Of a DNA stretch of 64,000 nucleotides, positions 19,759 to 56,267 are shown one piece after another (position 1 is the first letter of the stretch; each line of letters opens with the position of its first letter). The stretch comes from Podarcis melisellensis. Taxonomy: Eukaryota. The translations under genes were made by a program, and so were the position numbers. Where the stretch lies: the NCBI GenBank assembly GCA_964234715.1, contig OZ174291.1; one strand, given 5' to 3'. The notes under the pieces are model-generated. The model was not told the origin of the DNA, did not search any database, and worked only from the letters and a program-made list of their open reading frames with translations.

Positions 19759-20367
19759 TTTTTTTTTTATAAGATATTTATTAAAGATTTTCTTAATACA
19801 ATAGAAAAAACAAACAAAATAACATATAACTTTATAATAGCCATATTTTCTTCGCTTCTTTGGACTTCCTCACGTCTCTCGTTCCTGCGTTCCAAGTTTA
19901 TCAAACTTTACACAGCAATTTATCACCTTATTTCAATTCTTATTTTATAATTTTCCAATATTGTGTCCTTAATTTTAGATAATTTTACCCAAACCTTAAA
20001 AGCTTAATTTTAGCATAATATTTATCCAAAATTTATCTTTTCTTATATTTTCACTTATCTTCATATTCCTTTCAACTAACTTAATGGTGCCATATTATTT
20101 ATAATCTTGCATCTTTCTTAACACTCATACAATTTGCAATATTTTTGTAAATAGTCCTTAAATTTCTTCCAGTCCTCCTCCACAGCCTCTTCTCCCAGGT
20201 CTCGGATTCTGCCAGTCATTTCTGCTAGCTCCATATAGTCTATCAGTTGCATCTGCCATTCTTCCAGTGTGCGCAAATCTTGAGTTTTCCAGTGCTTGGC
20301 GACAAGTATCCTTGCTGCTGTTGTTGCATACATAAAAAATGTTCGGTCCTTCTTTAACACCCTCTGG
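19759..20367 (-). mobile_element. 5'-truncated L1-clade LINE (ORF2 C-terminus, 3' UTR, polyA)
   Basis: ORF ...AARILVAKHWK...LEEW...EEDWKKFKDYL, typical of an L1 ORF2 end. AT-rich UTR, AATAAA and A-tail (T-run 19759-19768). Identical 19-bp TSD CCGGCTTAGCACATTTTGA at 19740-19758 and 20368-20386. Confidence 0.85.
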
Positions 20368-22425
20368 CCGGCTTAGCACATTTTGAAGGAAGGAAAGCAA
20401 AACACACACAACCGTCTAAAGCTGCAATTCCCAGACTCCAGGGACCACAGTTTGGAAGCCCCTGATCAAAAGTGTTGGGGGGCGACTGAGGGAGAGTGCA
20501 TTAAACCCAGCTCCAAAACTATCTCCTTGCCCCACCGCTACTCCTTTTGTTCCTGACTTCTGGAAACTCACCATGATGCATCCAAGACTAGCTCTGCACA
20601 CAAACATGGGTCTGCGTGAGCCGATGGGTGGGGTTCGAGGAGCCAGGCCAAACTGCGAGGCACGCAGAGGCCAGCTCCACCCAGGATCAGGCCAGCTGCT
20701 GTCTGCATGTTCTTGGCGCTTCGGTGATGATGCAGAGCAGCCAGCAGGGAGCTGTTGCTCCGGTGCAAGCCAGATTCCCAACTGCGTACAGCTGATTACA
20801 TGCCTGTAACTTAATCTAGAGAAGACAGAAGACCTGCCTGCTGGGGAGGAATCTTCTGATTCAGGGTTTGGAGCTTAGCCTCAGCACTGGATTCCCCAGA
20901 AGTATGTGTTTAGGGCACCAGCAAAACAAAAGCAGAAAAAAATGATGTTGTTTAAAAAAAAAAGCATTGAAGTATTCAACATGCATGGGAAAAATCAGAA
21001 CTTTGTTAAACTTCCATATTCTCATATATATTTTTATTAAATTTTCTGTTTCACAATTTAAAATACTCATTTGACATCGTTAATATATCAATGACTTCCC
21101 TTCTTCTCTTTCCACGGTTCATTTTACAAATCATAAATCCTTTACAAAAACAATACCATTCAGTATTCCATTATTGCATCCATCAAAACTTGTTTACACC
21201 GTTTTCAGCTAGACTTCCATATTCTCCACTCCACACTTACCTCCCTCCATTGGGCCCCTAATGCTCAGCTTGTTCTGGAGGGTGCTGCGCTCCCCATGCA
21301 GAATCAGGACTGCAACTCTGGCGCAGTGCTTTGGTGGGAAATGGTGGCCTGGGGTGCTTTTTACCAGCTTTGTAATAAGTACGGAGCCGGCCACATAAAT
21401 TCACACCTTGGTAACTTCCGGGATGGGCTGCTGCAATCCATTCTACCTGGGGCTGCCCTGGAAGTCTGTTCAGAACCTCCTATTGATCTAAACACATCCA
21501 ACAGTCCCAGCAATGCAGCACAGGGTATTTAATTTCACCTGTAGTTGCTGCTCCATTTCTGAGCTCCATCCCAAGTGCTGGTCCTAACCTTTTAAATCTT
21601 CTCCTCTCATAGGTTCCCACCACTATGTTTTGATCAAGGCCAGACCCCAAAGTCTTTGCCCTCTGAGGTTTGGCAGTTGGGCTTGTGAGGGGGGTATTCC
21701 TGGTACCTCAGTTGTGGGGCACCCTCCCCAGGGGCCTGGCTCAGTCACTCCCTGCTCCTCAGAACTTGGCTTTTTCCGAGGGAGACTCCGCCCATTTTCA
21801 AAAAGGAGGAAAATGCAAAATATATAGTTCACTCTCACCTAGGAAAACAGGCTGGTGGGGGTGTGTGAAATTTTGCATATTTATTATTTAATTGCTACAT
21901 TTATATCTTGCCAGTGCCTTCCTCCAAGCTGCTCAGGGCAGCAAGCATGAGTCTCTTCCCACCCACCCAGATTTTATCCTCACAACAACCCTGTGAGGTA
22001 GAAACAAAATAAATAAAAAATCATTCCAGTAGCACCTTAGAGACCAACTAAGTTAGTTATTGATATGAGCTTTCGTGTGCATACCAATAACTAACTTAGT
22101 TGGCCCCCAAGGTGCTACTGGAAGGAATTTTATTTTGTTTCGACTATGGCAGACCAACATGGCTACCTACCTGTAACTAAACCTGTGAGGTTCTGCTGAG
22201 AGAGAGGTGTTCCAAGGTCACCCAGTGAACTTCCTGGTTTGAGTGGGGATTTGAACTCGCCATCCCATTGCACTTGCCTGACTTTTGTGCTCTAGCCATC
22301 AGGCCACATTAACTCTGCTTTCCTAGTTACCCCCTTCCACCTTTGTTGACAATTGCTGCTTCTTCTTCTCCTCTTCCTTCCTTCCTTCTCTGGCCAAGGG
22401 CCGCTTGGCAGGGCGGGCGTGGAGA

Positions 22426-22510
22426 GGGACATACTTGTGCCCTACAAAACTGACAGCCAGGAGACAGGAGGGGGACTGGCTGTCAATTCATAGGTCATAG
22501 TAGTGTGCCC
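22426..22510 (-). ncRNA. MIR192: pre-miR-192 (miR-192/215 family) hairpin
   Basis: Minus strand 22498-22478 reads ATGACCTATGAATTGACAGCC (seed UGACCUA, miR-192-type GCC 3' end). The complementary 3' arm CTGTCAGTTTTGTAGGGCACAA and a GGGCAC/GTCCC basal stem are present. Position between EHD1 and ATG2A matches human MIR192. Confidence 0.95.
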
Positions 22511-24055: not shown

Positions 24056-24139
24056 GGGTGCCCATCCAAAATAACAGCCCCCCCACTGGAATGGTTTGAG
24101 GCTTCCACGTGGAGTTGCTGTTACAGCCGATAGGCACCC
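24056..24139 (-). ncRNA. MIR194-2: pre-miR-194-2 hairpin
   Basis: Minus strand 24125-24104 reads TGTAACAGCAACTCCACGTGGA, one substitution from canonical miR-194-5p. The 3' arm CCAGTGGGGGGGCTGTTAT resembles miR-194-2-3p. GGGTGCC...GGCACCC basal stem; clustered upstream of miR-192. Confidence 0.95.
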
Positions 24140-33654: not shown

Positions 33655-33930
33655 ATGGCTTCCCCAAGGGAGCTGCTGCCCTTGACCCTAGTCTGGGCGC
33701 TGGTGCTGCTGGGAGGGACAAAGGGGGCTGGTCCCGAGGGTCCCTGCGAAACACAAGTACGATATCGAGAGAGCAGCTCAGAGACTGGCGGCAGCTGGCT
33801 TGGCACAATTGCTCTGCTCAGCAGTGTTTGTGCCACGTGGCTTTTTGTTTTTTATGCAATCCATTGCCTATGTGCCAGCAAGGACCGGTGCAGCCAGGGG
33901 CTAGAGGGGGACTGCGACCTGCGTTGGAAG
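33655..33930 (+). CDS. Uncharacterised single-pass membrane protein, paralog A, exon 1 (signal peptide, short ectodomain, TM)
   Basis: GCCATGG Kozak. MASPRELLPLTLVWALVLLGGTKGA (signal-like), CETQVRYR, then hydrophobic WLGTIALLSSVCATWLFVFYAIHCLC. The 92 codons end at a phase-0 AAG|GTGAGG donor. Mirrors paralog B exon 1. Confidence 0.75.
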
Positions 33931-36111
33931 GTGAGGGAACATCTACCTGTCTTCCTGTGTACCTACTGTCGGAGGGAACCGGCAGGGAGAACAGGTTGTT
34001 TGCAGAACAGAGAAAGACTGGGAAACACCAGTTAACTTTCTTTATTAAGGAAGCGGAACAGAGAACATGCAGAGACTTCTATGGGTTACTCCTGTCTTAG
34101 CAGTTGTCTGGACTGGCTTGCAACTCCCTGCTTCACTCTCTAACCTTCTGTGTCAGGCCTCTTCCTCTGTCTACGGCGAGACTCAAAGGACCCTCTCTGT
34201 TTCTGCTTGGTGACACACAGTAGACGCCTTGATCTGGGAGTTTGTGGGGCTTGCAGGCTGCCAGCAGAAAAGCTGTCAGGGTGTTTCTGCGGTGGAGATG
34301 GCAATCTGATTCCTGTTGGCTGGGGCACCTGCCCTCCTTCCAAGCTCCCAGCGTCTAGCACATCCCACCTTTTCCCCTCCTCTGAGGTGTGGCTGGTTTC
34401 CCAGGAGCCTGGATCCACATTCTCTCCCTGGGGGAAAGGTGGCTCAGGTGGGCTTCCACCTTGGTCAGGTGGCTTCAGGGCAGTCTTTATCAGGTACGGT
34501 GTTGGGGTGCAAATATCCGCCCAGCACCCCCAAGTTACCATGGATAGTGTTGGGGTGGCCATAGCTGTGCACTGCCAGCCATCTAGGTGGGGAGCAACTC
34601 TTCCCCATGCCACTGCAGGAGAGCGATCCCTGCAGAGGCTTGGGAGGGAAGCTGCGCCTGCTAGCCTTATGGTTGGTGGGGCGCCGCTGGCGGGCATGCA
34701 GGGAAAGAGGAGGCCACCGGCAAAGCCATGCAGCTCCCCCACTTGCTGGGGTGCGCCTGAGAGGCTGGCGCCCTGGCACGACGCACCACTAAGCCCTATG
34801 GGAAAGACGGCTCAGGCTGGCTTCCATCACTCCTCATCTAGCCAGTCTTTGACACTGACCTTCCCATCCATCTGCTCCATTTATCTTCCATCTTTCCTCC
34901 AAGGAGCTCAAGGTGGCAAACGTACTTCTCCTCCTCCCCATCTTATCCCCACAACAGTCCTGAGAGGTAGGTGAGGCTGAGAGGCAGTGGCTGGCCCCCG
35001 AGGTCACACCCAGTGAACTCCATGGCTGAGTGGGAATTTTAACCCCATTCTCCCAAGTCCTAGACCGACACTCTAACTGTGACACCACAACGGCAGGAAT
35101 CAGTGGGAATCGACTACTTTAGAAGGAAGCCCTAGCCTCTGCTGCTCATGCATTGGTGATCTCTGGAATAGGCTACTGCAATGCTCTCTCTCATTTGCGG
35201 GTGGATTTTGGGGCCCGATTTTAAGTGTTGACCTTTAAAATTGCATATGAAGTATTAAATGTGTCAAAAGTTATTTCATCTCCTCCAACCTTATCATACT
35301 TAGCAGAATATGTCTATCCCACCTGTATTCATTCAGAAACATGTGGTTTTTGTACATTGTTTCTCCTCTCCAAAAGCGGGCATTTTTACAAGCGAAGGTG
35401 CACCCTAAATAAAACGCACATCCCAAAATTCGGAACATTTATAAATGATTTAAACAGCACAGATTCCACCCTGGGATAGGGGGATCCCACTGTTCACTTC
35501 CTCCTTTTTTTGCAAGAACTGCCCTCTTGTTCCTCCCAAGATTCCTGCTCTTTGACCAGTTATTCTTAGCCATAACAAGAGGACCTGCCCTCTTATCCCA
35601 GGACTTATTGCGCTTACTCAGGAGCCCGGGGTGGAGAGACTATGCCAAAAGCCGTCTGAGGGTTTGCTGGATCCCTCGTACCTGGAGATTTAGGGAAGGC
35701 TGGCAAGATCTGCCTCTCAGCCAGGCTTGGAGCCTTTATCCATTGATGGTACATTTCTCAGGGGCCTTCTATAGGGGCCCGCATGCTTGTGGCAGGTGGG
35801 GCCACCGTCAAAAGTGAGTGGGGTCCTTTCCTTCTCTTCCACTTCCCCCCATTTTACCTCTCCCCAAAACGAGGGTTGCATGAATTGGGCTGAGGTTGGC
35901 AACTGGCCACCATGGCTGGCTTCAGGCTGCCCACCCTTCTCCTGTGTGTTTGGCCACCCTATCCTCAGAATGATAGAACTGTAGAGTTGGAAGGGACTGC
36001 CAAGGGTCATCCAGCCTGACCCCCTTGCTATGCAGAAATCACAATCAAAGAATCCCCTGGGGACAAGTGTTTGTTCTGAGTGGTCTGTTGCCTCTCCTCT
36101 TCCCCAAGCAG

Positions 36112-36459
36112 GGCGGCCAGGCAGCTTGTGGGGAAGGAGAAGAGAACCACCTCGCTGCATCTCAGGAGCTGGCCTGCACCCGAACCAGGGGCACGTCTCG
36201 CAAGCCGGTCTGCAGCCAGGCCCAGCAAGCCTACGCCCGGCAGCTGGCCTGCATGGAGCAAGAACTGGAAGGCTTCCTCTCCGAGGTGAGGAACCGGCGG
36301 AACGCCCTCGGAGACATCGTGGTGGAGGAGAGGTGCCCCCAGAACACGGAGCGGGGCCAAGACAAGCTGCGCATCACTGTCTACGAGATCTCAGACACCG
36401 AGGGGGCCGGGCGGCCGCAGCAGAGAAGACGCAGGCGGAAGATGCAACTTTCATATTAA
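36112..36459 (+). CDS. Paralog A, exon 2 (cytoplasmic tail)
   Basis: Pyrimidine tract with a NAGNAG acceptor (AAG|CAG|, start 36109 or 36112), phase 0 matching exon 1. CpG/GC3-rich. Contains MEQELEGFLSEVR, DKLRITVYEI and a basic tail RRRRRK; stop TAA at 36457-36459. Spliced product about 207 aa. Confidence 0.75.
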   Translation, partial: GGQAACGEGEENHLAASQELACTRTRGTSRKPVCSQAQQAYARQLACMEQELEGFLSEVRNRRNALGDIVVEERCPQNTERGQDKLRITVYEISDTEGAGRPQQRRRRRKMQLSY

Positions 36460-36474
36460 TTATATAAAAAAGAC

Positions 36475-37115
36475 ATACATGAGAGCTGAGTTGGCCTGGC
36501 TTGGAACATGGGTGCACATGGGTGTATATTGGTATACATGGGTTATGTGGAAGTACCTGGGGGTACACACTGGTATACCTGAGTGCATATGAGTGCATGG
36601 CTTGCACACGGGCGTGTACATGGGTATACATGAGTGCACGTGGGTGCATGTGAGTATACATATTTGTATGGGGGACATGGGTGGCGCTGTGGTCTAAACC
36701 ACTGAGCCTCTTGGGCTTGCTGATCGGAGGGTCGGCGGTTTGAATCCCCATGATGGAGTGAGCTCCCATTGCTCTGTCCCAGCTCCTGCCAACCTAACAG
36801 TCTGAAAGTGCAAGTAGATAAAAAGGTACCGCTGCGGTAGGAAGGTAAACAGCGTTTCTGTGTGCTCTGGTTTCCGACACGGTGTCCCGTTGTGCCAGAA
36901 GTGGTTTAGTCCTGCTGGCCACATGACCCAGAAAGCTGTCTGTGGACAAACGCTGGCTCCCTCGGCCTGAAAGTGAGATAAGCATTGCAACCCCATAGTC
37001 ACTTTAACCGTCCAGGAGTCCTTTACCTTTTCCCCCTACCTATTTGTATGGGCATACATGGGTTACTTGGGGGTATACATGGAAACATATGGGTGCAGAG
37101 GGGGTGCACATGGAT
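36475..37115 (+). repeat. Degenerate ~10-12-bp tandem repeat (TACATGGGTG-like), split by a SINE
   Basis: Recurring CATGGGT/CATGAGT/GTATAC units at 36475-36670 and 37040-37115. Confidence 0.7.
36671..37040 (+). mobile_element. Sauria SINE (older subtype) inserted in a degenerate tandem repeat
   Basis: Consensus head and core; TSD TATTTGTATGGG. Confidence 0.85.
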
Positions 37116-38377
37116 GTGCTGTGGGACTTCATGTGGCTAAAGAGAAAGTGCTATGAGGTCAGAGCTTGAGTAAAGATGGGCAGTCATGCTTAGCTACAGA
37201 GACTAAGGGGAGCCAAGAGGACTCAAATGTTATTTATTGCATTTCTATCCCATGATTTTCTCCAAAGAGCTTTATTATTGGCTTCTGCACCAAAGGAGCC
37301 AAGCCTATCATTGCAGTATTGGGAATAAAACATGGAGAGAGGAGACATTTGAACCCAGTCCCCGGATCTTAGTCACAATACTGCATATCCTCCAACATTT
37401 CTCCAATGAAAATAGGGGCTTCCTATTCCATTTTTATTATTATTATTACTATAATATTTTATTTATACCCCCACCCATGAAACTGGGTTGCCTCAGCCAC
37501 TGTGGGCAGCTTCCAACATTTATAAGAACAATAATAAAACATTACACATTCAAAAAACTTCCCTATGCTGGGCTGCTTTCAGATGTCTTCTACAGGCAGC
37601 ATAGTTACGTACTGTATTTTTTGCTCTATAAGACTCACTTTTTCCCTCCTAAAAAGTAAGGGGAAATGTGTGTGCATCTTATGGAGCGAATGCAGGCTGC
37701 GCAGCTATCCCAGAAGCCAGAACAGCAAGAGGGATTGCTGCTTTCACTGTGCAGCGATCCCTCTTGCTGTTCTGGCTTCTGAGATTCAGAATATTTGTTT
37801 TCTTGTTTTCCTCCTCCAAAAACTTGTGGTCTGGTGCATCTTATAGAACGAAAAATACGGTATTTATCTCCTTGGCTCAGGGTGTATGTGTCGGGAGTTA
37901 TATAACTCCATACCCTCCAACATTTATCCAGTGAAAATAGAGACATACTAAATCAAAGCAGGACATTCCAGGATCAGATCAGAAACTGGAATGGCTCCTG
38001 TAAATCTGGGACTGTCCCTGGAAAATAGGGTCTGATGCTGTTTGGTCTGATTTGTGCGGAGACTTGTTCAGATCACCTCAGCAAGGACTGGAGTCTCCAT
38101 CTATTGGCAGATTGAATAACCAGCAAGGTCTTGCCTTGTTAGCAAGCAGGGTGGTACATCTACTGCAGATTGATCAATAACAGATATCAAATCAAGAGGA
38201 GTCCAGCTTTCCTCCAGCCCAAGGCAGGGATGGCGATGATGACACAAAGGAGGGCAGCTGTGTGACTCTGGGCAGGAGGGAGGCTGGGCCAGAGAGGCCT
38301 CTGGCTTGCATGAAACACCAGGCAAGGCCAGTGCCTCCCTGCCCGCCCCACTTTCTGGCTTCCCCAAGCTCTTGGCC

Positions 38378-38662
38378 ATGGCTGTCAAAAGCTCCTCCCT
38401 GGCGTGGTCCTTCCTGGCCGTGGTCTTCATGATCGCAGGGGCCGCTGCTGTCCAGAGCGCCTGCGGACATCACTACCGCTACCGCAAGCCACGAGCCGAC
38501 ACCTACGAGTGGCAGGGCTACTTTGTGGCCCTGACCATCCTCCTGGGCAGCGGCTGCGGCCTGGCCTGGTGCATCCTCATTGTCACCTACAACATGGGCC
38601 AAAGGGGAGGCCAGGAGTTGCCACAGATCCCCTCTGCAGGTGAAGAGATGCCCGCAGCCATG
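38378..38662 (+). CDS. Uncharacterised single-pass membrane protein, paralog B, exon 1
   Basis: GCCATGG Kozak. MAVKSSSLAWSFLAVVFMIAGAAA (signal-like), CGHHYRYR, then TM-like YFVALTILLGSGCGLAWCILIVTY. Strong C/G-ending codon bias. The 95 codons end at a phase-0 ATG|GTGAGC donor. Confidence 0.78.
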
Positions 38663-38959
38663 GTGAGCCTCGGGGAGCTGGTGGGGCAGGAAGGAGGCAG
38701 GTTGCCAGTGCGAGAAGGAAGCGGAAGGGAGCCCCTTCTGTTGCAGGAGGCCAGGTGGTCACTTCTGCGGACCTCCAGAGGTTGCTGGACACAAGAACAG
38801 CCCGTAGGTAGCTCAGGCCAAAGCGAGGGGCCTGTGCAGTCCAGCACCCAGTTCTCACAGTGGCCAAATTCCCCATGTATCCTAGGAATCCAGATAGACT
38901 GTCGCTATGCCTGGAGGTTCCATAACAACCTAAGCCGAGTCCTTCCGCTGGATCAGGCC

Positions 38960-39520
38960 CAAGGGGGACCAACTGGTCCAGCATCCTGTTCTCACAGTGG
39001 CCAACCAGATGCCCCACTGCAAACCCAAAAGCAGGACCCAAATGCAAGGGCACTCTCCCCGCCTGCCATTCCCAGCATCTGGTATTATTCATACTGACTC
39101 TGACAGTGGCGGTTCCACACAGCCTTCTCCTCAATGAACTTGCCCAATCCTCTTTGAAGGTGGCCATCGCTGCATCTTGTGGCAGTGAGTTCCCAAGTCT
39201 ATCCACTATGTGAAGAAGGACTTTGTTTCGTCTGCCCTGAATATTCCAACATTCAGCTTCACTGGGCGGCCCTGAGTACAAGGATTATGAGGGCGGAATA
39301 AAAACTTTCTCCTTATCACCTTACACCAGGCATATTTTTACACACCTCTGCCATCTCATCCTCCTCCCTCTCTCTCTCCTTTTCTCTAAATTCAAAAGAC
39401 CCAAATGTTGTAGCCTTTCCTGGTAGGGGAATTGCTCCACCGCCTTGACAGTTTTGAGTGTCCCTTTCTGACCGTCTTCTACGATATCCCATTGGATCAG
39501 ATACAAATGGTATAATGACC
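38960..39520 (-). mobile_element. CR1 LINE 3' fragment
   Basis: Decayed RT C-terminal signature (PYQERLQHLGLLNLEKRRERG) plus a CR1-like 3' UTR. Similar fragments at ~45900-46370, 51590-51900 and 57150-57430. Confidence 0.65.
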
Positions 39521-40598
39521 ATTGGCAGGTGTGTCTAAAGACAGGGCCAGCCCAATAAATGATGCCGCCTGAGTCCAAGGACAAGATGGCTGCCGCCACC
39601 CTCTTCCAGGAACAAAAGCTGACCAGGCTGGCCATCGAACGTTGGTTCCTCCACTGCACCAGAGGGCAGGAGACCATGGCCACGTTCACACCTGACATAT
39701 AAAGAGCTATCACTTTAACAGTCCCAGCTTCCCCCGTAGCATTCTGGGAGCTGTAGTTTATAAAGGTGCTGAGAGTTGCTAGGAGACCCCTATTCCCCTC
39801 TCAGAGCAGCTACAATTCCCAGAGTTCCCTGTGAAGAGGGTATGGTTGTTAAAATCATTATGGGAACTGTAGCTCCGTGAGGAGAACCGGGGGCCTCCTA
39901 ACAACTCTCAGCACACCTCACAAACTACAGTTCCCATGATTCTTTGTTACCACTATTTAAAGTGGTAACACGGTGCTTTTAACGTGTGGTGTGGCCTTGC
40001 TTAGTGGGTTCAGAACAGGCATACACAGCTCTGCCCATTTTCTGCCCCTCAGTATGTACCGCCTGAGGCAGCAGTCTCACTCTGCCTCATGGCTGAGCTG
40101 GGCCTGTGCATTAGGATTGGGTGGGGTTGTAAGTTGCCCTGAGGTCAGAGGGAAATTAAATGAAGCGACTGCAGATAGCGGCAATTCAGGAGAGAATGTT
40201 TTAATTGTAATTTGGCCATTATTTGGTGGCACCTCCCTTTGAAAGTGTCCAAATATGGCTGCCTTAAAATAAATAGTTGAGTATCTTTGTAGGTTAAAAG
40301 GTCCTCCTACTATCTTCTCAATAGTGCCATTTCTGGTTTTGAATTTGGGTCAGGCAGAGGGATCGGTTAAGCAGAGAGAATCCTGTGTCTTGGATGAACA
40401 AGGGAGGTGGGGAAAGGATGGGTAGTTAGGAATACTTTTGTTGAAGAGGGGGTCCTGAGGAGGGAGGCTTTTACCATCAAGGCTGCACTGATCTTGTCAT
40501 ATTTGCAGGCAAGATAGGAGTCAGGGGCTAGGAATGGAAACCAGAGGGGCCTGACCTTGCAAGGCCCTGAAATGTGACCTCTTTTCTGCTTTGGACAG

Positions 40599-41693
40599 GG
40601 CCACCAAGACAAACTGACACTGAGCCCAGGGATGAACCGTGAAAGGTCCGTCAGCTTTGCGACCCTGCCTGGGCTGAAGAGCCAAGTCACAAACGAGGAG
40701 GACCAGCCTTGGCTGAAGCGACAAGTCTCAAAGGAGGAGTTTCGGACAAAGTCCCAGTTGGACACAAGCATAGGAAGTCGGACGCCGTCCCAACTGAACT
40801 TAAACCAGGGGGTTCGGGCCCCATCCCAGATGAACGCAAGCGAGGCAGTTAGCACCCTGTCACAGATGAACACAAACGATGGGGTACGGACCCTGTTCCA
40901 GATGAATGAGGCAAATAGGGTTCCAGCCCAGATGAACATGACTGAGGGGATGAGGGCCCAATCCCAGGTGGATGAAATGATTGGGAACCCCTCCCAGAGG
41001 AACGTGAACGAGGCAATTTGGACCCCCTCTCAGAGGAACATGAACGAGGTGAACAGGGCCCCCTCCCAGATGAACACGAATGAGGCCATTTGGACCCCAT
41101 CCCAGATGAACACGAACAAGGTGATTTGGACTTCCTCCCAGATGAAAGCAAATGAAGCAGTTTGGACCCCCTCCCAGAGGAACATGAACGAGTTGAAAAG
41201 GGCCCCATCCCAGATGAACATGAAGGAAGCAATTTGGACCCCCTCTCAGAACGAGGTGACTAGGACCCCAACCCAGAATAACATAAACAAGCTAAAAAGA
41301 GCCCCAACGCAGCTGAACATAAATGAAACGGTTGGGACCCCATCCCTTCCACCTCAGCAGGAAGACCAGTCCTCCAGGCCCGAAGAGCAAAGCGGTGGCA
41401 CTCTGTGGAACTTCATGGAGCAGGAGCTGGAAAGGCTTCTGAGCGCCCTACGCCTCCACCGGACCCCCACGCCAACCCCCACGGCTGAGGAGACGCCGGC
41501 CCCCTTGGCCAACGATACTCCGAGTGCCCCAGCTGAGGAGGTGCCGAAACCCACGGCTGAGGAGGTGCTGGGCCTCGACCAGACTGAGGACAAGGAGACC
41601 TTGATGCACCTCATCATCTGTGAAGTCCCCCAAGACAGAGGAGCCACCAGGGGTCGGGGGCGCAAGAGGAAAGCGAGCAGAGGACGCAAATAA
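40599..41693 (+). CDS. Paralog B, exon 2 (repeat-containing cytoplasmic tail)
   Basis: Acceptor CTTTTCTGCTTTGGACAG|GGC is phase 0 and in frame with the 353-aa ORF at 40632. Contains 12-aa SQ repeats, MEQELERLLSALR, DKETLMHLIICEV and a basic tail RGRGRKRKASRGRK. The stop TAA overlaps AATAAA. Spliced product about 459 aa. Confidence 0.78.
   Translation, partial: GHQDKLTLSPGMNRERSVSFATLPGLKSQVTNEEDQPWLKRQVSKEEFRTKSQLDTSIGSRTPSQLNLNQGVRAPSQMNASEAVSTLSQMNTNDGVRTLFQMNEANRVPAQMNMTEGMRAQSQVDEMIGNPSQRNVNEAIWTPSQRNMNEVNRAPSQMNTNEAIWTPSQMNTNKVIWTSSQMKANEAVWTPSQRNMNELKRAPSQMNMKEAIWTPSQNEVTRTPTQNNINKLKRAPTQLNINETVGTPSLPPQQEDQSSRPEEQSGGTLWNFMEQELERLLSALRLHRTPTPTPTAEETPAPLANDTPSAPAEEVPKPTAEEVLGLDQTEDKETLMHLIICEVPQDRGATRGRGRKRKASRGRK
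40743..41345 (+). repeat. Coding minisatellite of about 17 degenerate 36-bp units (consensus about TPSQMNxNEAIW)
   Basis: Recurring ACCCC(C/A)TCCCAGA(T/G)GAAC...GA units. The shorter units (9-10 aa) all keep the reading frame. Confidence 0.9.
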
Positions 41694-42899
41694 AGTGCAG
41701 AGAAAGAGAGAGGGTGGCAGGTCGGTGTGTGTGTTGTGAGGCAGGAGGAGTCATTGGTAGAAACGGCTTCCTTTGCCACCACCCTCCTGCATATATCCCC
41801 GGGAGATTCCTTGATTTTAAAACAGTTCTTCATCCCAGGAGCTCCGAAGGGCCTACATAACCCTCATGGAATTGCAGAGTTGAAAGAGACCCAAAGGGTC
41901 CTCTATTCCAACCCCTTGCAGGAATAGCAGGGACCACCCTGTTAATCTCAAAGCAACCCTGGGAGGTAGGCTAGGCTGCCCCAAGTATACCCAGTGAGCT
42001 TTGTGACTGAGCAGAGTTTTGAACGCAGGTCTCCCTCTTCTAAGTCCAACAGGCCGAACTTCCCCCAAACTGGTGCTATGGGTGTAGCCAGGATTTATTT
42101 TAGGGGAGGAACATGCTTTATGTTGGGGATGGGGGAGGTAGAACTGAGCTATCTGTGATGCAATTGGTCAGTTAGTTGAGTATTTTTATTTATTACTTGA
42201 TTTAGTGGGGGGCAGCTGTCCCACTGCTATGCCCATGCCTGGTGCCCTCCATATGTTTGGACTACAACTCCCAGCATGTCCCAGGCAGCACAGCTGTACG
42301 ATGCTAGGATTGGAGGGAGCTTGTACTGTGGTTCAAAACCTTAGGCCTGTTATTCTCAGGCTAACCTGGCTGTCAGGAGCCAGAATCAGGGGTGGTCAGC
42401 AATAAAAACACCTGGTGTCAGAAACCAAAACAGTGCAGGCCTAGTGCTCCTACCAACTCTTCCCAGTAGGCAAATTGTCCTTCTTGTAAAGGTATCCCAT
42501 GAACTAAAAGTTATCTAAAGGGCAGAGCTCAAATGACCTTTTTCACACATGATTTCATTTCTTATACAAATACCGAGGGAAATAAGTCTCTCAGTGCCAC
42601 CAGTTTTTGCCAATGTCTGGTTCATTTCAGCTCATATAGAACCTTTATTTTCTACCACGATGGAACCCGATAATGCTTTTATTTTTCAAAAGTCATTATT
42701 ATTTGTAAAGGGAGCTTTTGTATAAGCTAGCACTTCATTATCCCTCTGGAGCTGCGCTGGATGTTTCGACGTGTGTGTCCTTCCAAGCTCGTGACACTTG
42801 ATAGTTCAAATCTCTGAATCTTTGGGGTTTCTCTCTGTCTCTTTGTTATGTTTGCACCTTTTTTGTTTATTTTAAAATAAAAAAACAAATCAGCTAAGA

Positions 42900-46453: not shown

Positions 46454-46951
46454 ATGAAGCCGTGCCTGAGTAGCGTCACTTCCAGCTCATCTCAGCAGGC
46501 AACCTTCCCCAGCGGACTCAAGTGGGGCCTGGCCATCCCCATGGAAGGCTATCACAGCCTGGAATGCATCCCTCCTCCACCTGCTGCCGCTGAACCAGAC
46601 CACTGGGAGGCCCCCAATACGCCTCTGGGCCCCCCCTCAGAATCAGAAGCCTTGGTGTGCGGCAGGGGAAGGGATGCCCCCCAAGGGAGGGCGGAATCGC
46701 CACCCTTGGGTGCCTCCCCCAGCAGCAACGGCCTGCAAGGGCCGCCGGCCACGCCTCCCTGTGAGGTTGCCGGAGCGGGGCCCAGCCAGAAGCCCCTTCC
46801 TGGAAGCCAGGAAGCCCCCGTCCCTTTTGACCGCTCTGTCTCGGGCTCATCGACCTGCTCTTCGCTGGGAGGGTCCTCCCAGGAGTCGGACGACGTCTTC
46901 AGCGATGCCGAGGACAGGAGCCCCCTGGGGAAGAAGCGGGTGCTGCGGAAG
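46454..46951 (+). CDS. Inositol-trisphosphate 3-kinase-like gene, coding exon 1 (disordered N-terminus)
   Basis: ATG follows the acceptor. Pro/Ser-rich, ending SVSGSSTCSSLGGSSQESDDVFSDAE, which resembles the Ser/acidic motif before the CaM-binding exon in ITPKA/B/C. Phase-0 donor AAG|GTGAGG. The start codon is inferred. Confidence 0.8.
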
Positions 46952-49900
46952 GTGAGGAGAGGGAGGGGGCAGTTGGGGGTAAAGGCAGCAGGGGAGGGAG
47001 GGGAATCGTGCCCCCCAAAGGAAACAGAGAGCCCCGCCTCAAGGCCCAGCGATTTCAGAGCAGTCAATGGACTGGCTTGCTGTGGCTCTCCAGAACTTGA
47101 GAGGGAAATGTCCTTCTCAGCCCTAAGCCTGGGGCCTTCTACATGCAAAGCAGGGGCTGTACCACTGAGCCCATGGCAAAGTAAGATTTTACCTTAAGTT
47201 TTATGCTGGTTTTAATAGATGTCATTTTTTATTGTATTTTGCTTTAATTTTTTTTGTGTAAAAAAAGAAGAAGTTGCTAATAATAATAATAATACTGGGA
47301 TTTGCGTGGCTAGCTGGAAGGTGAAATGCATACCCTCCAACATTTCTCCCATGAAAATTGGGACATTATATTCAATAATAATAATTTTGCTATTTATACC
47401 CTGACTGGGTTGCTTTATTATAAACTTAATTAAAAAATAGGGACACTTGGAGGGTCTGTAAATGGCGGCATAATTCTGTGTCTCCCGTCACCCCGGGACA
47501 ATAATGAAGCAGAGTGGATCCTATTGACATCTAAACAAAAAGTATTACACAGCCTCAGCAAGGGGATGATCCAAGGAATACGGAGAACCAAAAAGCAAAT
47601 CTGCAAGGTTAGATCTTCAGCAAGAAATAGATGGAGCTCTGTCTGAGGCTTCAGAGGAGACCTCAGATACTGACATGACCAAAGGCAATATGAAGGTCCC
47701 CAAAGGCGGGAAAGTATCTGCCATAATGGAGGAGGACAGAGACTTAGATGAGTATATTAATAATAATAACAACACTTTTCAGGACCAACCTGGCATTTAA
47801 GAGCAGCACAGCAGAGTAGGGTGGGTGGGTGCTGACTGGCCTGGTCACCCAAGATCCAAAGGCTGTGCAATGGCCTTGATGCATCTAGTGCCTCTTCTCT
47901 TAACCTGACCTGACTGAACTCATTGCCAGACCTCCCCACTAGCTATCATTGCCCGGGTACATTGTTGCTCCACATGCTGCAAAATGAGGAAACGTTTCCC
48001 ACTGTGACCTCCCAAGATCTTAGTATAGGGGTCAGAAAAGTGCAGTGCTGCTCTATAAAATGCAGGAAGGTTGTCGTCATCTATAATATTGCTGATATGA
48101 AAAGAAAAATAGTGTAGGAGGCACGAAAAGGATGAAGCACAAAGGCATGTCGCAGGACTTCCAGGCACGACTGCAGATGAGTCAGAGCTACAGTCAGCTT
48201 GAAAAAGCGGTTCCATAGCGAACTTCCTCTCTGCTGGTGCAGAGCATAGGGTTGGAGCCTTTCGCTCTGATTGCATTCACAGCCTCCGTCCTACAACCCC
48301 CTCTCGCCACAGCTGGTGCATCGGGTAGTTTTTAAATGTGGGCCTCATCTTTCACACCCGGCATCCTTCATCTCGGACCACTCCACCTTGGTTCTCATCC
48401 AGGGGACTTTTGCTCCTTCTCCTCTTTACCTTCCCGACTCTTGTACCAAATTTGGGGCAGCACCGTCCCGTTTCTGTCTTAACTTCACTCACTCATCCCT
48501 GCTAACAGGGCTGTGGCATCAAGGAGAGCTTTAGAATTATGAAATTGTTTAGATATATGTCTTGGGCCCAGGCAGCCTGAAGGGTCACATCTCCCTGTAC
48601 AAACCTGCCCAGGTGCTGAGAGCCTTGAGTGAGCACCTTCTCTCAGTCCCATCAACATCAGTTGGTGGTGACCCAAGACAGAGAGACAGAGACTTTTCTG
48701 CAGCTGCTCCCAAATTGTGGGATTCCCTCTCAGAAGAGGTTGGACTGGCTCCCTCCTTGTTTTCCTTCCACTGGCAGACTAAAACCATTTTATTCAGACA
48801 GGCCTGCGAAAACGTAAGTTGCAGGCTTGACCGATCACTGGGCTGCTGTCAGGACAAACTGCATTTTAATTTCTGGTTCTAAATGTTTTCTGGTATTTTG
48901 ATGGTTGCTTTTAACTAGTTTTTATTGCTGTGTTTTAATTATTGACGTGTTCAAACACTGTAAGCCGCCTTGAATCCCACCTTGGGAGGAAGGAAGAATA
49001 TAAGCAGATTTAAGAAGAGTAATATTTATTTATTAAGCCTGTGCGTGTGAAGAGGGGAGCACCCTTTGCAAGAGGACCGCAAGAGGACCTTTGCTTTGTG
49101 GTCCTGGATCATTAGAGATCCCTGGCCAGAGATCTTGCATTTCCAGGGATTCTGCTGCAAGGAGGATCAGGGCCTCTCTCTGGCGGGTGTCAAATCCCCA
49201 TCAGAGCCACCGAGTCAGGCTGACCTGAGGGTGCCCCCAGCAAATGTGCAAGCTGGGAGGCCTGCCTGGAGGGGGCCGGAAAGCGTGACTGTGCTGGGGT
49301 GAGCCTCCAGTTGAAGGTAGAGGATTGTCCTCTACTAACTCACAGCCCCGGGCAGGATGTTGTGGTTCTGCTGCCAGCCCAGCTGACTTGCTCTTGTGCA
49401 GGTCGAAAAAGCTCTTCTGGTGCAACAGCAGCAGCAGAGGCCTCAGCAGGGTTCTGCGGTGGTTGCCGTGTAGAGCGGTTGGGTGTGCGATGGTGAGCTG
49501 TTTGCACGTGCCGCGAGCTCAGGCGCCCTTCCTCCTTGCACAACTGGCCCCGTGCAAGCCGGAGCACACCTCTCTCCTTGCACAGCAGCAGCTCGGCCGA
49601 GATTTCCCTGTTGCTAAGCAAAGTGCTCTCTCCCCCTGACAAAGGCCTTTCCCTTCCTCTTTTCAAGGCTGAGTCTCGGCTGCTTCCTCCAAGACGGGTT
49701 TCCTCTGGCTGTGGTTAGAAATGCTGATGAATGAACTGGAGGGAAGAAAGGGGGAGGGGAGACTTGACAAGCCTCCTCCTCCTCTGCTTGGCAGGCTTCT
49801 TCTCTCTCGGCTTGTCTTTGCTGGGTCCCAGGAAAAAAGCCTCTTCTCACCCTCTCCTGTTTCCTGGGCTGCGTCTCAGGGCCAGTCCTGAGCAGGTCCA

Positions 49901-51205
49901 GCATCAGGGTTCAGCCTTGCTGGCTTCTGGGGTTGCAGGTTGCGCTGAATGAACAGAGTGGTGGGGCAGGGGAGTGTGATGGAGGCTTCCCCCCACCAGT
50001 GGCATGGCTTCGCTGAGGCTGGGTTAACCTTGGTCCAGTTTCTGCCTCCCAGCCTAACCTACTTTGCAGGTGGGAATTAACCAAGGACTCAGGCCTGGGA
50101 GGGTTCAAATCCCCGCTTGGCCACGAGGCTCACCGGGTGACCTTGGGCCAGTCACTGCCTCGCAGCAGTGACCTACCTCGCAGGGTTGTTGTCAGGGATG
50201 AATGTCGGGAGGGGGAGAACAATGCACACCACTTTGAGCTCCTCGTGGGGGGGGGGGGAAGCTGGGATAGAAATGCAACAAGTAATTGGGAGGGCTCCCA
50301 AGAGAGGGGAGAGGAGGCTGAGGGAACCCTCCCCAAGGGAGGGTGTTTGAAAAAGAGTGAGAGGCTGCCAGCTCTGCAGGCAAGGGGTGACATAACTGGG
50401 CTCCTGAGCCCCACGGGGGTGCCGCAGAAAAGAATGTAGTTGGCTAAGTGAGCCGCGTGGACTCAAAACGGTTGAAAACCTCTGCCATACGGGTATCGAA
50501 CCTGCAACCTTGTCATTATCAGCACCACATTCTAACCAACTGAGCTTCGTTTTTTGTTTTTGTTTTTCTTAATTGTTTTGTGTTCTCATTTTGTATTTTT
50601 ACATTGTTAACTGCCCTGTGATCTTCAGATGAGCGGTGGTATACAATTTTAATAAATAGTAATAGTAATAGTGATAGAAATCCCTTAGCAACTTGGGATC
50701 AGTTTACCTACAAGACTGCCTGACTCCGTATGCGCCCACTCAACTCCTTCGATCTGCAGAACTGGCTCTGTTACAGGGGCCACATAATACCCGTTCTGCA
50801 GTGGTAAGGATTCAATCTTCTAGTGAGGCAGGACCTACATGTTGGAACTCCCTGCTGACTGAGATCAGGAAGGTGCCTGCACTATACTCTTTTCGGTGTC
50901 TTCTAAACAAATTTTTGTATAGGCAAACCTACCCAGATGTTTAGAAAGCTGATGTGAATTTTAACCTATTGTTATTTAAGTTTTCTGATGTCTTCTTGTT
51001 AATTTTAGTGATCGTTTTGATGTTTTATCTTTTTTTTGTAAACCACTTTGTTGTTCTCTGCAATCAAGAGGTGCGTACATTTTATGAAGTAAATTAAGAA
51101 GTAAATAAATATAAAGCCCTCCGCCTGACCCCCCCCCTGGATCTGTGCAACTTCCTGTTTTCCCCCATCATCTCGTAACGGTCCCTGTCTTGGAATATTT
51201 CCTAG

Positions 51206-51290
51206 ACCAAGTCCTGGAAGACGTTCTTCACGATGGTGCACTGGTCCTTGCGGAGACGCAGCTCTTGGGTCCAGCTGGCCGGCCACGAAG
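51206..51290 (+). CDS. ITPK-like coding exon 2 (calmodulin-binding region to WVQLAGH)
   Basis: TAG| acceptor; TKSWKTFFTMVHWSLRRRSSWVQLAGHE; phase-1 donor AAG|GTAC. Confidence 0.92.
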
Positions 51291-52221
51291 GTACCACTAC
51301 AGGACCGGGGGGGGTGGGGTTGCATGTTGGAAGCCGGGTCCAGGAGGGGAGGTGGCCAATGCAACAGCTGCAAAGGAATCGGGGCCAGATGGATCTCCCC
51401 CACTGCAGCTTAGAAGAAGCCACTGGATCTGAGGATGCAGCGGGTAGCCCTTTCCCTTCTCCACAGTTTATTTCTGCCTCCCCAGGACCACAAGCCAGGG
51501 TTTCCGTGGGGCTCTTGGGCAAACTTAAGCACTTTGTCTCAGTTTCACCAACTTGGATGGGTTTAAAAGAGGACGGGGCAAATTCATGGAGGTAAAGAAC
51601 CTAAGCAGAGCCCTGCTAGATGAAACCAAGGGCCCATCTTTAGTCCAGCCTCCTGTTCTCACAGTGGCCAACCAGATGCTTGTGGGAAACCCACAAGCAG
51701 GACCCGAACACAAGAGCCCTCTCCCCTCCGGTGGCTTCCAGCAACTGGTGTTCAGAAGCATTTACTGTCTCCGCCTGTGGAGGCAGATACCTCTCTCCTC
51801 CATGAATTCATCCAGTCCTTTTTCAAAGCCGTCTAGGCTGGCGGTCACAGCGCTGCCTCCTGCGGGAGCAAGTTCCATAGATTAACGATGTGCTGCGCAA
51901 ATGGTAATAGATGCGTGCAATAGATTTGCCACTTCTTATGCTCTTCTGCAAGCAGGGGGACAATTGTGGACTCCCTCCAGGGTTGTAGAAGATGTGTCTA
52001 CGATTGCCAGTTGCCGAAAAGCACAAATCAGGGGAGTGTTGCTGTTGCACTCGGGTCCTGGATTCCAGTTGGTGTATCTGGCCATAATACTGGACTGAAT
52101 GGTGTGCGCGCACACACACACACACATTCTTTGGCTTGATCCAGCCGCCACTGCAGGTCTTTTACTGTGCTTCCTTCCCCTCCCTCTGTTTCTTCTGACC
52201 ATCCTCGTTCTTTCCCCCCAG

Positions 52222-52435
52222 GGAATTTCAAGCCCAGCGAAGGAGGCCAGATTCTGAAGAAGTTCAGCTCGGTGGAAGACGCCTGTCTGGCAGAGCTGAT
52301 GGCCGACGTCCTGCGCCCCTTCGTGCCCGCCTACCACGGGGTGGTGGAGGTGGGGGGCGAACGCTACATCCAGATGGACGACCTGTTGTGCGGCCTTGAC
52401 ATGCCAAGCATCATGGACTGCAAGATGGGCACCCG
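52222..52435 (+). CDS. ITPK-like coding exon 3 (kinase N-lobe, PxxxDxKxG motif)
   Basis: [14 protein letters not shown]...[12 protein letters not shown]...[11 protein letters not shown]; 214 nt with canonical AG/GT boundaries. Confidence 0.96.
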
Positions 52436-53819
52436 GTGAGAGCAGGACCTTTCTGGGGGAAAGGGGTGGGCATAGGAGGCTCCTTCATCTCAGGTGAGAC
52501 AGGAGGGGGTGAGGGGAGGGCAGAAGTCCCACAGGCACTGAAGGTGGCTTTGGGATGGAGAAGAAGATATATCCCAGGACTGTCTTCACCACTGAGCGAA
52601 GGTCATCACCAAAGGTCAGCTTGCATGGCGCTTTTCCACAGTTGTAAGTCGCCTTGAGCAGAGTTTTAGCATGCAGATACAATGGTACGTAATCCGTTCC
52701 CGAAGACCATTTGACTTCCGAAACGTTTGAAAAACAAGGTGCAAAGGGCGACCGGCAAATTCCATTGAGAAAATTGAAAAACACGCATTCGGCTTCCAAG
52801 GTGCGTTCGGAAACGGAAGCATTTTCGGTGTTTGGGTTCCGAAACGTTCGGCGTGAAAGCAGCCAGAATCAGTAAATAAAAACACATTGAAACGTATGAT
52901 GCAGAATTAAAACAATCCCCATACAAGTCACAATCAGATCGAAATATGCAAATAATAATAATAATAGCAAAATTAAACAGCGCCAGAATTCAATATCAAC
53001 CCCTACAAAACAACAACAACAACCCTCTAAGCAATACCCCACCCCAAGAGCCTGGAGGCAGCCTGTGAAGCAGGTTCTGAAGGACTTGCAGCCAGGATGG
53101 TCTCTGACTTCTTTGCCAGCCTCCGTTTTTGTAGCTGGAGTCAGTTAGATGGAAAGGCAGGAATGGGTAAGGTCCTAGAATCATAGAGTTTAAGGGACCC
53201 TGAGGGCCATCTAGTCTGACCCCCTGCAATGCAGGTCAGTGTCAGCAAGGTGGAATCGGAGGCTGTAGCTGGGTCGCCAGCAGTGGTCTGTGTTTCGCAT
53301 CTGTCTGTTGCATAAGTGGGGGGTTTTTTGGGTGATGCAGGCCTGCCGATAATAGCAGCCAGATGTGGGAGACTGCAGAGCTAGCGTGTGGGCGAATCAC
53401 TAACCGGACATCCCAGATGGATCTGCCTTGTACTGAGGCAGACCCTTGGGCCCATCTAGCTCAGTATTGCCTGCATTGACTGGCAGCAGTGGTTCCCAGG
53501 GTTTCAGGGAAGGCCTTTTCTCTGCCCTACCTAGAGGCACCACCAGGGATTGCCTCTGGGGCCTTCTGCAAACAAAACACTGACCCTCCCTCCCCCAACA
53601 TTGCAGCCAGTCCTCCTCCTTGTCCCACTCTACCACTCCCTAAGAAAATGAGAAGATCCAGTCCAGCTTCCTGTTCTCCCATTGGCTGCCCAGATGTTCA
53701 TTCGGGGAAGTCTGCAAGCAGGACCCCAGCACGAGAACCCTCTCTCCTCCGGTGCTTTCCAGCAACTGGTTTTTTGGAAGCAGTGCTGCCTTCCCTGAAC
53801 ACCTCCTGTTTCTGCCCAG

Positions 53820-54024
53820 GACGTACCTGGAGGATGAGCTGTCGGAGGCGCAGCAGCGGCCAGCGGCACGGCGTGACCTGTACCAGAAGATGGTGAAAGT
53901 CGACCCGCAGGCCCCCACCGCACAGGAGCACAGCCAGGGCGGCGTCACCAAGCCGCGGTACATGCAGTGGCGTGAGGGGATCAGCTCCAGCGCCTCCCTG
54001 GGCTTCCGCATCGAGGGAGTCACG
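53820..54024 (+). CDS. ITPK-like coding exon 4 (inositol-binding IP lobe)
   Basis: TYLEDEL...[17 protein letters not shown]...[25 protein letters not shown]; 205 nt; donor ACG|GTGAGT. Confidence 0.96.
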
Positions 54025-54077
54025 GTGAGTGGCGGCGACAGCCGAGCAGGAGGTAGAGAAACGGGGTGATAGTAACT

Positions 54078-54185
54078 CCTGCCCAGTATTGCAGGAATAT
54101 GCAGCTGTCCAGTACGGGGACTGAACCTGCAACCTTGGCATTATCAGCACCCCACACTAACCAGCTGAGCTATCCAGCTGGTCCC
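54078..54185 (-). mobile_element. tRNA-Ile(GAT)-derived short SINE (lacertid POM-like); related head at 50485-50548
   Basis: Minus strand reads GGATAGCTCAGCTGGTTAG...GGTGCTGATAATGCCAAGGTTGCAGGTTCAG...GGACAGCTGCATATTCCTGC. Matching GGGGTTGGACTAGATG-type tails are scattered through the window. Confidence 0.6.
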
Positions 54186-54191
54186 AATAAA

Positions 54192-54194
<3 letters not shown>

Positions 54195-54243
<49 letters not shown>
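54195..54243 (+). repeat. (AAT)n microsatellite at the end of a retroelement fragment in an ITPK intron
   Basis: About 16 perfect units. Confidence 0.95.
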
Positions 54244-54244
<1 letters not shown>

Positions 54245-54618
54245 TATTTTTGTTTATACCCCGCCCTTCCTGGTTCAAAGACTGGGCTCAGGGCAGCTAA
54301 CAACAAATTTAAAACACTTAATTGTAAAAGCAGCATAAAATACAGTATAAAAACATGAATAACAATAAAATTCAAAATGCAGAAATGAATTTAGGGGAAA
54401 TAAGCATTAGATAATCACCAGGGCTAGCTGGCTGAATTGGTCCTACTTGGGCTAGTGAGGAGGCCGGGGGGAGAATTAGCTGTGGGGTCTCCGAGCGGGT
54501 AATCTTCATAAAAGGAGAGGGGGGGAAAGAAAGGGGAACTAAAGACCAGGCTGAATTCAAATTATTATTATTATTATTATTATTAGAACACCCCCCACCC
54601 CAATCTCTTTCTCTGCAG

Positions 54619-54720
54619 ATCGAGGGGGGAGCCGTGCGGAAGGATTTCAAGCAGACTCGCACCAAGGAGCAGATTGTGGATACTTTCCTGATGTTCACCA
54701 AGGCCCGCCTCGACGTTCTG
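54619..54720 (+). CDS. ITPK-like coding exon 5
   Basis: IEGGAVRKDFKQTRTKEQIVDTFLMFTKARLDVL; 102 nt, phase 0/0. Confidence 0.92.
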
Positions 54721-55295
54721 GTGAGACTGGTTGGGGGGAGACAGTGGGAGCAGGGGGCGAAATCTCAGCCACTGGGTGTCCCCCCCCCCCGTCCTCTGTA
54801 CCTGGACTGCTCATTCTCAACCTGAAATAGAAGTTCACCTGATATTCACAGGAATGTTGCCCACCAGCATACTTCTGGTGCTTTTCAAGCAGTGAAGTAT
54901 AAACTTGACAGGTTTAGCACTTCACAACAACACCCCCCCCCCCCGCCCATAATTCAACAGCACCAAAGTTGAGTTCCAGTGAGAGGAATGGAGATTTCTC
55001 ATTGGGAGAGCTGTGGCCCTGTCATGTGGGATGGGGGCGTGGGACTGGTCTCTCCCGTGTTTTGAAACCTCTGGCTTCTGTGTGGTGGGAATGTAGCCTC
55101 CCATATCAAGGTAGGCATCTTGCCCCTCCCATGTTTTGCCCCCAGCCCGGCCTCCTGTTCACGTGTGGCACTCAGAAGTCGGCCCACAAGGACTTAACTG
55201 AGATGGCAAAATTAACATGTTCAGTGAGAGAAAAATCATTACTGACATTCATTGGGATCCTCTTTTAGTGAGAAAGACAAAATAAACTTGTAATA

Positions 55296-56195: not shown

Positions 56196-56267
56196 AGCAC
56201 ATATGCAGCCCGCTTGGAGAGCATGCGCCAGGTGCTGGAGGAGTCTGCCTTTTTCAAGACCCATGAG
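56196..56267 (+). CDS. ITPK-like coding exon 6
   Basis: STYAARLESMRQVLEESAFFKTHE; 72 nt; donor GAG|GTAAGG. Confidence 0.93.

Follow-up and report, generated by a model that had tools for sequence, protein, structure and literature searches.

The protein FAM209 of the mouse is a testis-specific component of the inner nuclear membrane which binds DPY19L2 and is needed for biogenesis of the acrosome; 170 residues long, it has a signal peptide and one transmembrane (TM) segment, with its C-terminus inside, and it was reported to be "only present in mammals" and to be homologous to no other protein (PMC8627553). It has been placed in a DPY19L2/FAM209-Arp-CAPZA3 scaffold (PMC13752377), and its gene is located at the Tfap2c-Bmp7 domain border (PMC6137755). 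Our literature search retrieved no paper linking FAM209 to reptiles. Another group of described proteins, the immune signalling adaptors of the DAP12, CD3-zeta, TRIM or SIT type, also combines a signal peptide and a single-cysteine ectodomain of very small size with one TM segment and a tail in the cytoplasm. It is with these systems in mind that we consider two neighbouring plus-strand genes, named here A and B, which lie between positions 33655 and 41693 of a window of 64,000 nucleotides from the lizard Podarcis melisellensis (contig OZ174291.1 of assembly GCA_964234715.1; the window is the whole stretch that was analysed, and it contains no runs of N). The reading that we favour, with reasonable if limited confidence, is that they form an expressed pair of paralogues belonging to a diverged FAM209-like family of squamates and turtles, in which gene B has acquired a fast-evolving repeat tail.

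Gene A begins with GCCATGG at 33655. Its first coding exon (33655..33930, 276 nt or 92 codons), delimited from sequence and hydropathy and found as the same exon in the P. raffonei protein P0001, would specify a signal peptide, a luminal stub of about 24 residues carrying C-E-x-Q-x-R-Y-R, a TM helix and a juxtamembrane Cys-rich stretch; the hydropathy profile displays an N-terminal signal-like segment and a single TM segment at residues ~47-76. A donor site (AAG|GTGAGG, 33930/33931) opens a GT..AG intron of 2181 nt in phase 0 (33931..36111), closed by a pyrimidine-rich acceptor (...ccccaagcag|GGC, 36111/36112). The intron ends in a NAGNAG tandem acceptor (AAG CAG, 36106-36111), and RefSeq lists isoforms of 208 and 209 residues. 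The second exon (36112..36459, 115 codons and a stop at 36457-36459) encodes a long amphipathic helix (..QAYARQLACMEQELEGFLSEVRNRR..), an invariant DKLRITVYEI motif and a basic C-terminus. Gene B is built on the same framework. From a GCCATGG start at 38378, its exon 1 (38378..38662, 285 nt or 95 codons) encodes a predicted signal peptide, a luminal C-G-H-H-Y-R-Y-R stub and a TM helix (hydropathy again gives a signal-like segment and one TM segment, at residues ~47-73); the donor is ATG|GTGAGC (38662/38663), the phase-0 GT..AG intron covers 1936 nt (38663..40598) and the acceptor is ...ctttggacag|GGC (40598/40599). Exon 2 (40599..41693, 364 codons and a stop at 41691-41693) holds a Ser/Gln/Asn-rich repeat region, the LWNFMEQELERLLSALRLH helix, a Pro/Glu/Thr-rich linker, an MHLIICEVP motif and a basic C-terminus. 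It is by some 250 residues of fast-evolving 12-residue repeats that B has been enlarged with respect to A: a tandem array with a Tandem Repeats Finder period of 36 nt (12 codons) and 7.5 copies occupies 40980..41250, with units resembling TPSQMNxNEAIW, the copy number of which varies in frame among Podarcis species.

Both genes thus follow a single plan, two coding exons separated by a phase-0 intron placed after the TM region, and the same motifs recur in the same order in A and B: CETQVRYR and CGHHYRYR in the stub, a Trp before the TM segment, MEQELEGFLSEVR and MEQELERLLSALR in the helix, LRITVYEI and MHLIICEV, then the basic C-termini. The features that define the family (a C-x-x-Q-x-R-[YF]-R stub, an ME.ELE..L helix, an [IV]-x-[YCH]-E-[IV] motif and a basic C-terminus) are found in both. 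A previous sequence-only reading of this DNA had proposed this two-gene architecture, with its GCCATGG starts, first exons of 92 and 95 codons and phase-0 introns, together with a list of collinear motifs; the splice sites are as it placed them, all the motifs that it listed are present, and hydropathy agrees with a signal-like segment followed by a TM segment in each exon 1.

Transcripts were sought in sequencing runs which carry coded labels and are RNA-like by guess, three of them (X1, X2 and X3) coming from one study of a related species. The joint of gene B is read directly in contigs of these three runs, at 38661/2^40598/9 with GT..AG ends and with depths of 19.6 (X1), 262.8 (X2) and 337.2 (X3). 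The contigs span 38296-38661 and resume from 40598 to 41709; a joint that lacks the intron and has GT..AG ends has the look of spliced RNA. Two of them start at 38299 and 38296, which places a 5′ untranslated region (UTR) at 38296..38377. The species of this transcriptome has one extra 36-nt unit in gene B, at window positions 40990-41025, and a 15-nt deletion, also in frame, at 41567. In the case of gene A, four runs belonging to two studies (X1, X2, X3 and X5) have contig pieces that start at 36110, a position that corresponds to the acceptor at 36112 plus two letters common with the end of exon 1. The contigs carry further upstream letters, 301-307 of them in X1-X3 and 41 in X5, which fits exon 1 of gene A preceded by a 5′ UTR of about 27 nt. 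Of the two joints that had been proposed from the letters, that of B is therefore read outright in three runs, while transcript pieces from four runs, read at the acceptor side, are only consistent with that of A. The 3′ UTRs of both genes are very short, as an AATAAA polyadenylation signal (41689..41694, plus strand) overlaps the stop codon of B, where the longest contig ends at 41709, and the contigs of A end 12-23 nt past its stop, with transcript ends listed at 36438-36482. Such short 3′ UTRs are compatible with spermatid transcripts, though they are no evidence for them.

The same runs show another feature. In all the RNA-like runs, contig depths reach the thousands over 36600-37000 and 37600-38000, between A and B, and over 38800-39200, in the intron of B. 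These stretches are probably repeats of the short interspersed nuclear element (SINE) type, and their loose ends contain the tRNA-like GGTTCGAATCCC.

Both genes are present in P. muralis, P. raffonei and P. lilfordi, with the same splice joints as in the window. The orthologue of A in P. raffonei is LOC128403970 (P0001, 208 residues, 98% protein identity over exon 2), and that of B in P. muralis is LOC114586058 (P0004, 459 residues), of which residues 1-95 are 100% identical to exon 1 of the window gene, exon 2 having 95% protein identity. Further models exist as LOC128404173 (P. raffonei), LOC114586971 (P. muralis), and CAI5797957 and CAI5797956 (P. lilfordi), under the labels "uncharacterized protein" in RefSeq and "Hypothetical predicted protein" in P. 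lilfordi, with no name or function. As searches were made exon by exon, P0001 and P0004 stood in for the spliced products. The window is collinear with the corresponding loci of P. raffonei and P. lilfordi, flanking and intronic DNA being ~92-96% identical, and as a whole its source stands as a further Podarcis-like lacertid with a non-coding divergence of about 4-6%; identity is 95.7-97.1% in exon 1 of A and 98.2-99.3% in the other three exons. The reading frames of A and B are intact across the three Podarcis genomes, and the sole coding indel with respect to P. raffonei and P. lilfordi is an in-frame one of 3 nt in the signal peptide of A, where P0001 carries one extra Leu. The ratio of non-synonymous to synonymous divergence (dN/dS, Nei-Gojobori method, counts summed over the phase-0 exons, with a one-sided binomial p against neutrality) is 0.12 against P. 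raffonei (p 1e-3) and 0.17 against P. lilfordi (p 2e-3) for gene A, and 0.22 (p 5e-4) and 0.36 (p 2e-2), respectively, for gene B. One might imagine that the open reading frames are transcribed and yet left untranslated, in non-coding or decaying lineage-specific loci where they persist by chance, and the repeat region of B, fast-evolving and variable in copy number, would accommodate that view. We hold it to be very improbable: dN/dS is well below 1 in all four comparisons, indels are in frame only, exons are more conserved than introns, and the motifs are kept across lizards, snakes and turtles. Genes A and B are real, spliced, expressed protein-coding genes under purifying selection.

The family of which they are part is a small one, found in squamates and turtles. 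An exhaustive HMMER search of 1.84 billion representative sequences, made with a two-sequence profile (one lizard, one snake), recovered 17 proteins, each with E<1e-10. Members are named from lacertids, cordylids, iguanians, geckos, skinks, varanids, snakes and turtles: among lizards from Podarcis, Hemicordylus, Anolis, Sceloporus, Pogona, Sphaerodactylus, Gekko, Paroedura, Lerista and Varanus, among snakes from Pantherophis, Crotalus, Naja and Ophiophagus, and from several turtles. Neither this search nor a word-indexed one made with a 15-sequence profile returned a mammal, bird, crocodilian or amphibian member. The orthologues or paralogues from Pogona, Pantherophis, Sceloporus and turtles also fit the plan common to A and B. 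In the family alignment, the luminal C-E-x-Q-x-R-[YF]-R and the Trp before the TM segment are conserved, and the tail displays the helix ..QAYAxQLACMEQELExFLxEVRxRR.., the motif DKLRITVYEI[AS]D, which hardly varies, and a C-terminus of Arg/Lys.

From these sequences, A and B are both predicted to possess a cleavable signal peptide, a luminal stub, ~20-25 residues long, in which one Cys is conserved, and a single TM helix followed by a cytosolic or nucleoplasmic tail. The tail would consist of an amphipathic helix of about 40 residues (..QLACMEQELExFLxEVRxRR..), a short, invariant motif resembling a strand (DKLRITVYEI for the A type, M..II.EVP for the B type) and an Arg/Lys C-terminus resembling a nuclear localization signal. 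The AlphaFold2 (AF2) model of P0001, with a mean predicted local distance difference test (pLDDT) score of 65, has helices at residues 5-20, 48-82 (the TM helix) and 127-166 (in the tail); the last two are confident (pLDDT 85-91) and the remainder is disordered. Compared with the shapes of the ESM Atlas, it found only unrelated families at TM-score <=0.36, a comparison that is meaningless for a mostly disordered protein of two helices, and a language-model search with the tail only gave no matches. A KKXX signal for retrieval to the endoplasmic reticulum (ER) was considered and rejected, as it is inconsistent across members.

That A and B are paralogues cannot be read from direct comparison, and here the sequence-only reading, which took their collinear motifs as the mark of an old duplication, needed other support. 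BLASTP of A against B is not significant for exon 1 (E 8.6) and marginal for the tails (E 0.003). Profile-profile alignment of the first exons goes further: 72 collinear columns are aligned with a probability of 93-95% and E 4e-7 to 3e-8, with the C..RYR stub in register, the A-type profile containing zero B-type sequences and hydrophobic segments being known to inflate such scores. The strongest argument comes from Pogona vitticeps, in which a hybrid gene, B′ (P0009), joins a B-type exon 1 (E 6e-25 and 45% identity to exon 1 of B in the window) to an A-type tail (E 4e-32 to exon 2 of A). It stands in a cluster where an A-type exon 1, the tail of which is truncated (the model P0016 ends after ..GDILLDE), is followed by B′ and then by a B-type exon 1, the last element of the stretch that was read. 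Some 680 kb from it, the same chromosome holds a second B′-B copy (the Pogona loci being L002 10196-21226 and L001 10001-19819), and there a full orthologue of B is read, with repeats of its own. This orthologue has conserved LWRFMEKELERLLGALRLH, M.FIIHEVP and a basic end; LW.FME.ELERLL.ALRLH, M..II.EVP and the basic end are kept in it. Direct BLASTP being too weak, homology of A and B is shown via the profiles and the Pogona hybrid; with the identical gene plan and the tandem position added to these, paralogy is very likely. The duplication is old, B-type exons being common to Lacertidae and Agamidae, and, given the dN/dS range of 0.12-0.36 and the intact frames seen above, the proposal of an ancient duplication kept under purifying selection holds. 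Within 10 kb downstream of the A genes of Pantherophis and Sceloporus no B-type exons were found, which means loss, relocation or a greater distance.

The lone luminal Cys invites a comparison with the immune adaptors mentioned at the outset, as it could, in the proposal of the sequence-only reading, link the proteins into disulfide-bonded homo- or heterodimers. Lizards, snakes and turtles keep it in their A- and B-type proteins, and the two genes are adjacent and both present in the same runs. Unlike DAP12, CD3-zeta, TRIM or SIT, however, the reptile proteins have no charged residue in the TM segment, no ITAM (immunoreceptor tyrosine-based activation motif) or tyrosine motif in the tail, and no sequence match to these adaptors; moreover, the A-type copy P0016 of Pogona has Arg in place of the Cys, and nothing beyond adjacency speaks for binding between the two proteins. 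We regard dimers of this kind, argued by analogy, as quite improbable. The identity of an immune-adaptor-like protein was itself rejected, on the TM segment devoid of charge and the missing ITAM.

Several members match the Pfam family PF15206, that of FAM209. P0001 matches it over residues 100-190 (profile positions 58-148, E 4e-5, 23.8 bits), P0003 over profile positions 88-148 (E 9e-3) and P0005 over 95-148 (E 0.11); on the N-terminal side, P0013 matches with residues 24-69 (profile 8-52, E 2e-4), P0010 with residues 29-101 (profile 15-84, E 1.4e-3) and P0014 with residues 22-69 (profile 11-54, E 5e-3). Exon 2 of gene A in the window itself matches over residues 7-97 (E 7.5e-4, 19.6 bits). 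Six members from six lineages thus match PF15206, their matches falling in the right order on its two halves, and no other Pfam family is matched by three members or more, other TM-type families appearing at E 0.03-0.2 and confined to two near-identical gecko paralogs of one cluster. Precomputed PF15206 flags are also found. The likeness extends to the build of the proteins: as FAM209, they are small type I single-pass proteins, in which a signal peptide and a luminal stub of short length precede the TM helix and a tail of ~100 residues (PMC8627553), a topology matched by hydropathy and by the AF2 model, with a presumed cleavage site, and at the centre of the tail stands a single amphipathic helix, after which comes a short motif that is hydrophobic or acidic. 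They differ in that the reptile proteins have 186-220 residues where mouse FAM209 has 170, the linker being longer and the C-terminus rich in Arg/Lys, and in that gene B, which has no match to PF15206, adds its ~250 residues of 12-residue repeats. Judged from these profile matches, the A/B family is probably a distant relative of mammalian FAM209. To call it unrecognised, a candidate new family, as had been done from the letters alone, was too strong, considering the RefSeq models and these collinear matches below threshold.

Several observations weigh against this interpretation. All the PF15206 scores lie below the Pfam gathering threshold (the best is 23.8 against 27 bits), there is no match for 16 of the 22 sequences scanned, and gene B has no Pfam match. 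The comparison is one of single sequences with the PF15206 profile. A language-model atlas search, which tells little either way, returned neighbours at <=0.85 (TMIE, TMEM210 and similar single-pass families) and no FAM209. The exhaustive profile search did not reach mammalian FAM209, which is weak evidence, because a match of ~24 bits cannot be significant at that database size. The likeness between the tails of A and B is confined to a 22-residue helix, with E ~1e-3. Finally, there is no synteny between this locus and that of mouse Fam209: over 64 kb the neighbours are mir-192/194, an inositol-polyphosphate-kinase (IPK-domain) gene and ATG2, in the order mir-194/192, A, B, IPK-domain gene, ATG2, where the mouse gene sits at the Tfap2c-Bmp7 border; a differing genomic position bears, however, on orthology, not on homology.

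Taken together, these points could be turned into another account, that of a separate single-pass family restricted to reptiles, for which size, topology and amphipathic helix are convergent with FAM209, or create a compositional artefact, and whose function is unrelated to the acrosome. Scores under the curated cut-off, most members without a match, no mammalian protein recovered by HMMER, a neighbourhood foreign to mouse Fam209 and language-model neighbours among other small TM families are all what it would lead one to expect. It accounts poorly for the fact that six members from six lineages point to one Pfam family, with matches which, combined, span both halves of PF15206 in the correct order, and for the distance between 4e-5 and the 0.03-0.2 that generic TM families reach in the two gecko paralogs. 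We consider it unlikely and retain a remote kinship with FAM209 as the probable reading. Nevertheless, because the scores remain under 27 bits and gene B has no match, the genes are filed as FAM209-like and not as members of FAM209.

If this kinship is accepted, we may ask what such proteins would do. By analogy with FAM209, A and B could be proteins of the ER or of the inner nuclear membrane of spermatids, with tails that recruit partners which fasten the acrosome onto the nucleus, together with membrane partners of the DPY19L2 type; this is a tentative proposal, to which we give somewhat less than an even chance. The proteins would be inserted co-translationally in the ER, with a luminal N-terminus and the tail on the outer side; partners would be bound by the amphipathic helix and by the invariant DKLRITVYEI motif; the basic C-terminus may aid retention at the inner nuclear membrane; and the site of action would be the interface between nucleus and acrosome in the spermatid. 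The protein of gene B might carry that core on a long spacer of repeats that changes rapidly. A brain and testis transcriptome of Podarcis siculus was published in 2017 (PMC5617171). What is at stake is not negligible, as only two proteins of the inner nuclear membrane, FAM209 among them, are known to be required for attachment of the acrosome in the mouse. Were the relationship true, the origin of this fertility factor would shift back to early amniotes, the conserved core (the C..Q.R[YF]R stub, the TM segment, the amphipathic helix and [IV]x[YC]E[IV]) could guide mutagenesis of mammalian FAM209, and the natural series formed by A, the hybrid B′ and the repeat-bearing B could tell which half of the protein does what. 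Should the link with FAM209 fail, there would remain a conserved and unnamed family of membrane proteins of squamates and turtles, already present in RefSeq.

The neighbourhood of the genes gives some perspective on their age. Upstream of gene A, on the minus strand, are the precursors of mir-192 (22429-22506, Rfam, 61 bits) and mir-194 (24058-24139, Rfam, 68.6 bits). Downstream of gene B, an IPK-domain gene (46500-58723, plus strand, Pfam PF03770), ITPK-like by its exon sequences, has exons that include 52140-52436, 53644-54066 and 58433-58723, its start at ~46.5 kb being derived from gene calls in relatives. The last coding exon of ATG2 follows on the minus strand (63362-63736, positions 1626-1697 of the 1697 of profile PF13329, E 4e-16), that gene being convergent with the plus-strand genes of the window. 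The sequence-only reading knew of no protein-coding gene between MIR194-2 and ATG2A in human; as a context for A and B this is incomplete, in that the IPK-domain gene also lies there, between gene B and ATG2. The family gene of a snake has mir-194 7.8 kb upstream (L004 2161-2242), which makes it the positional orthologue of gene A. In the turtle Caretta caretta (L003), an ABC1-kinase gene (1-1660, minus strand) precedes a family member (10001-11412, plus strand) and an IPK-domain gene (16316-21412, plus strand), and the distance from family gene to downstream same-strand IPK-domain gene, ~4.9 kb, is that found after gene B in Podarcis. The linkage with the kinase, being common to turtle and Podarcis, therefore predates the split between squamates and turtles. 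COQ8B and ITPKC are neighbours in human, and the stretch between them would be the mammalian interval of interest. One could speculate that the reptile genes mark the ancestral amniote position of FAM209, beside an ITPKC-like kinase gene, the arrangement of turtles and lizards, and that FAM209 is an old amniote family of the spermatid nuclear envelope, diversified in squamates by exon-level recombination (A, hybrid B′, B), the repeat tail of B being a new perinuclear scaffold element; as a whole we see this scenario as rather unlikely.

The window also contains a dispersed repeat of ~350 nt, found at 1223-1563, 5973-6322, 16869-17204 and 60285-60636 with 81-92% identity, and it recurs in P. 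raffonei and P. lilfordi, downstream of their gene B.

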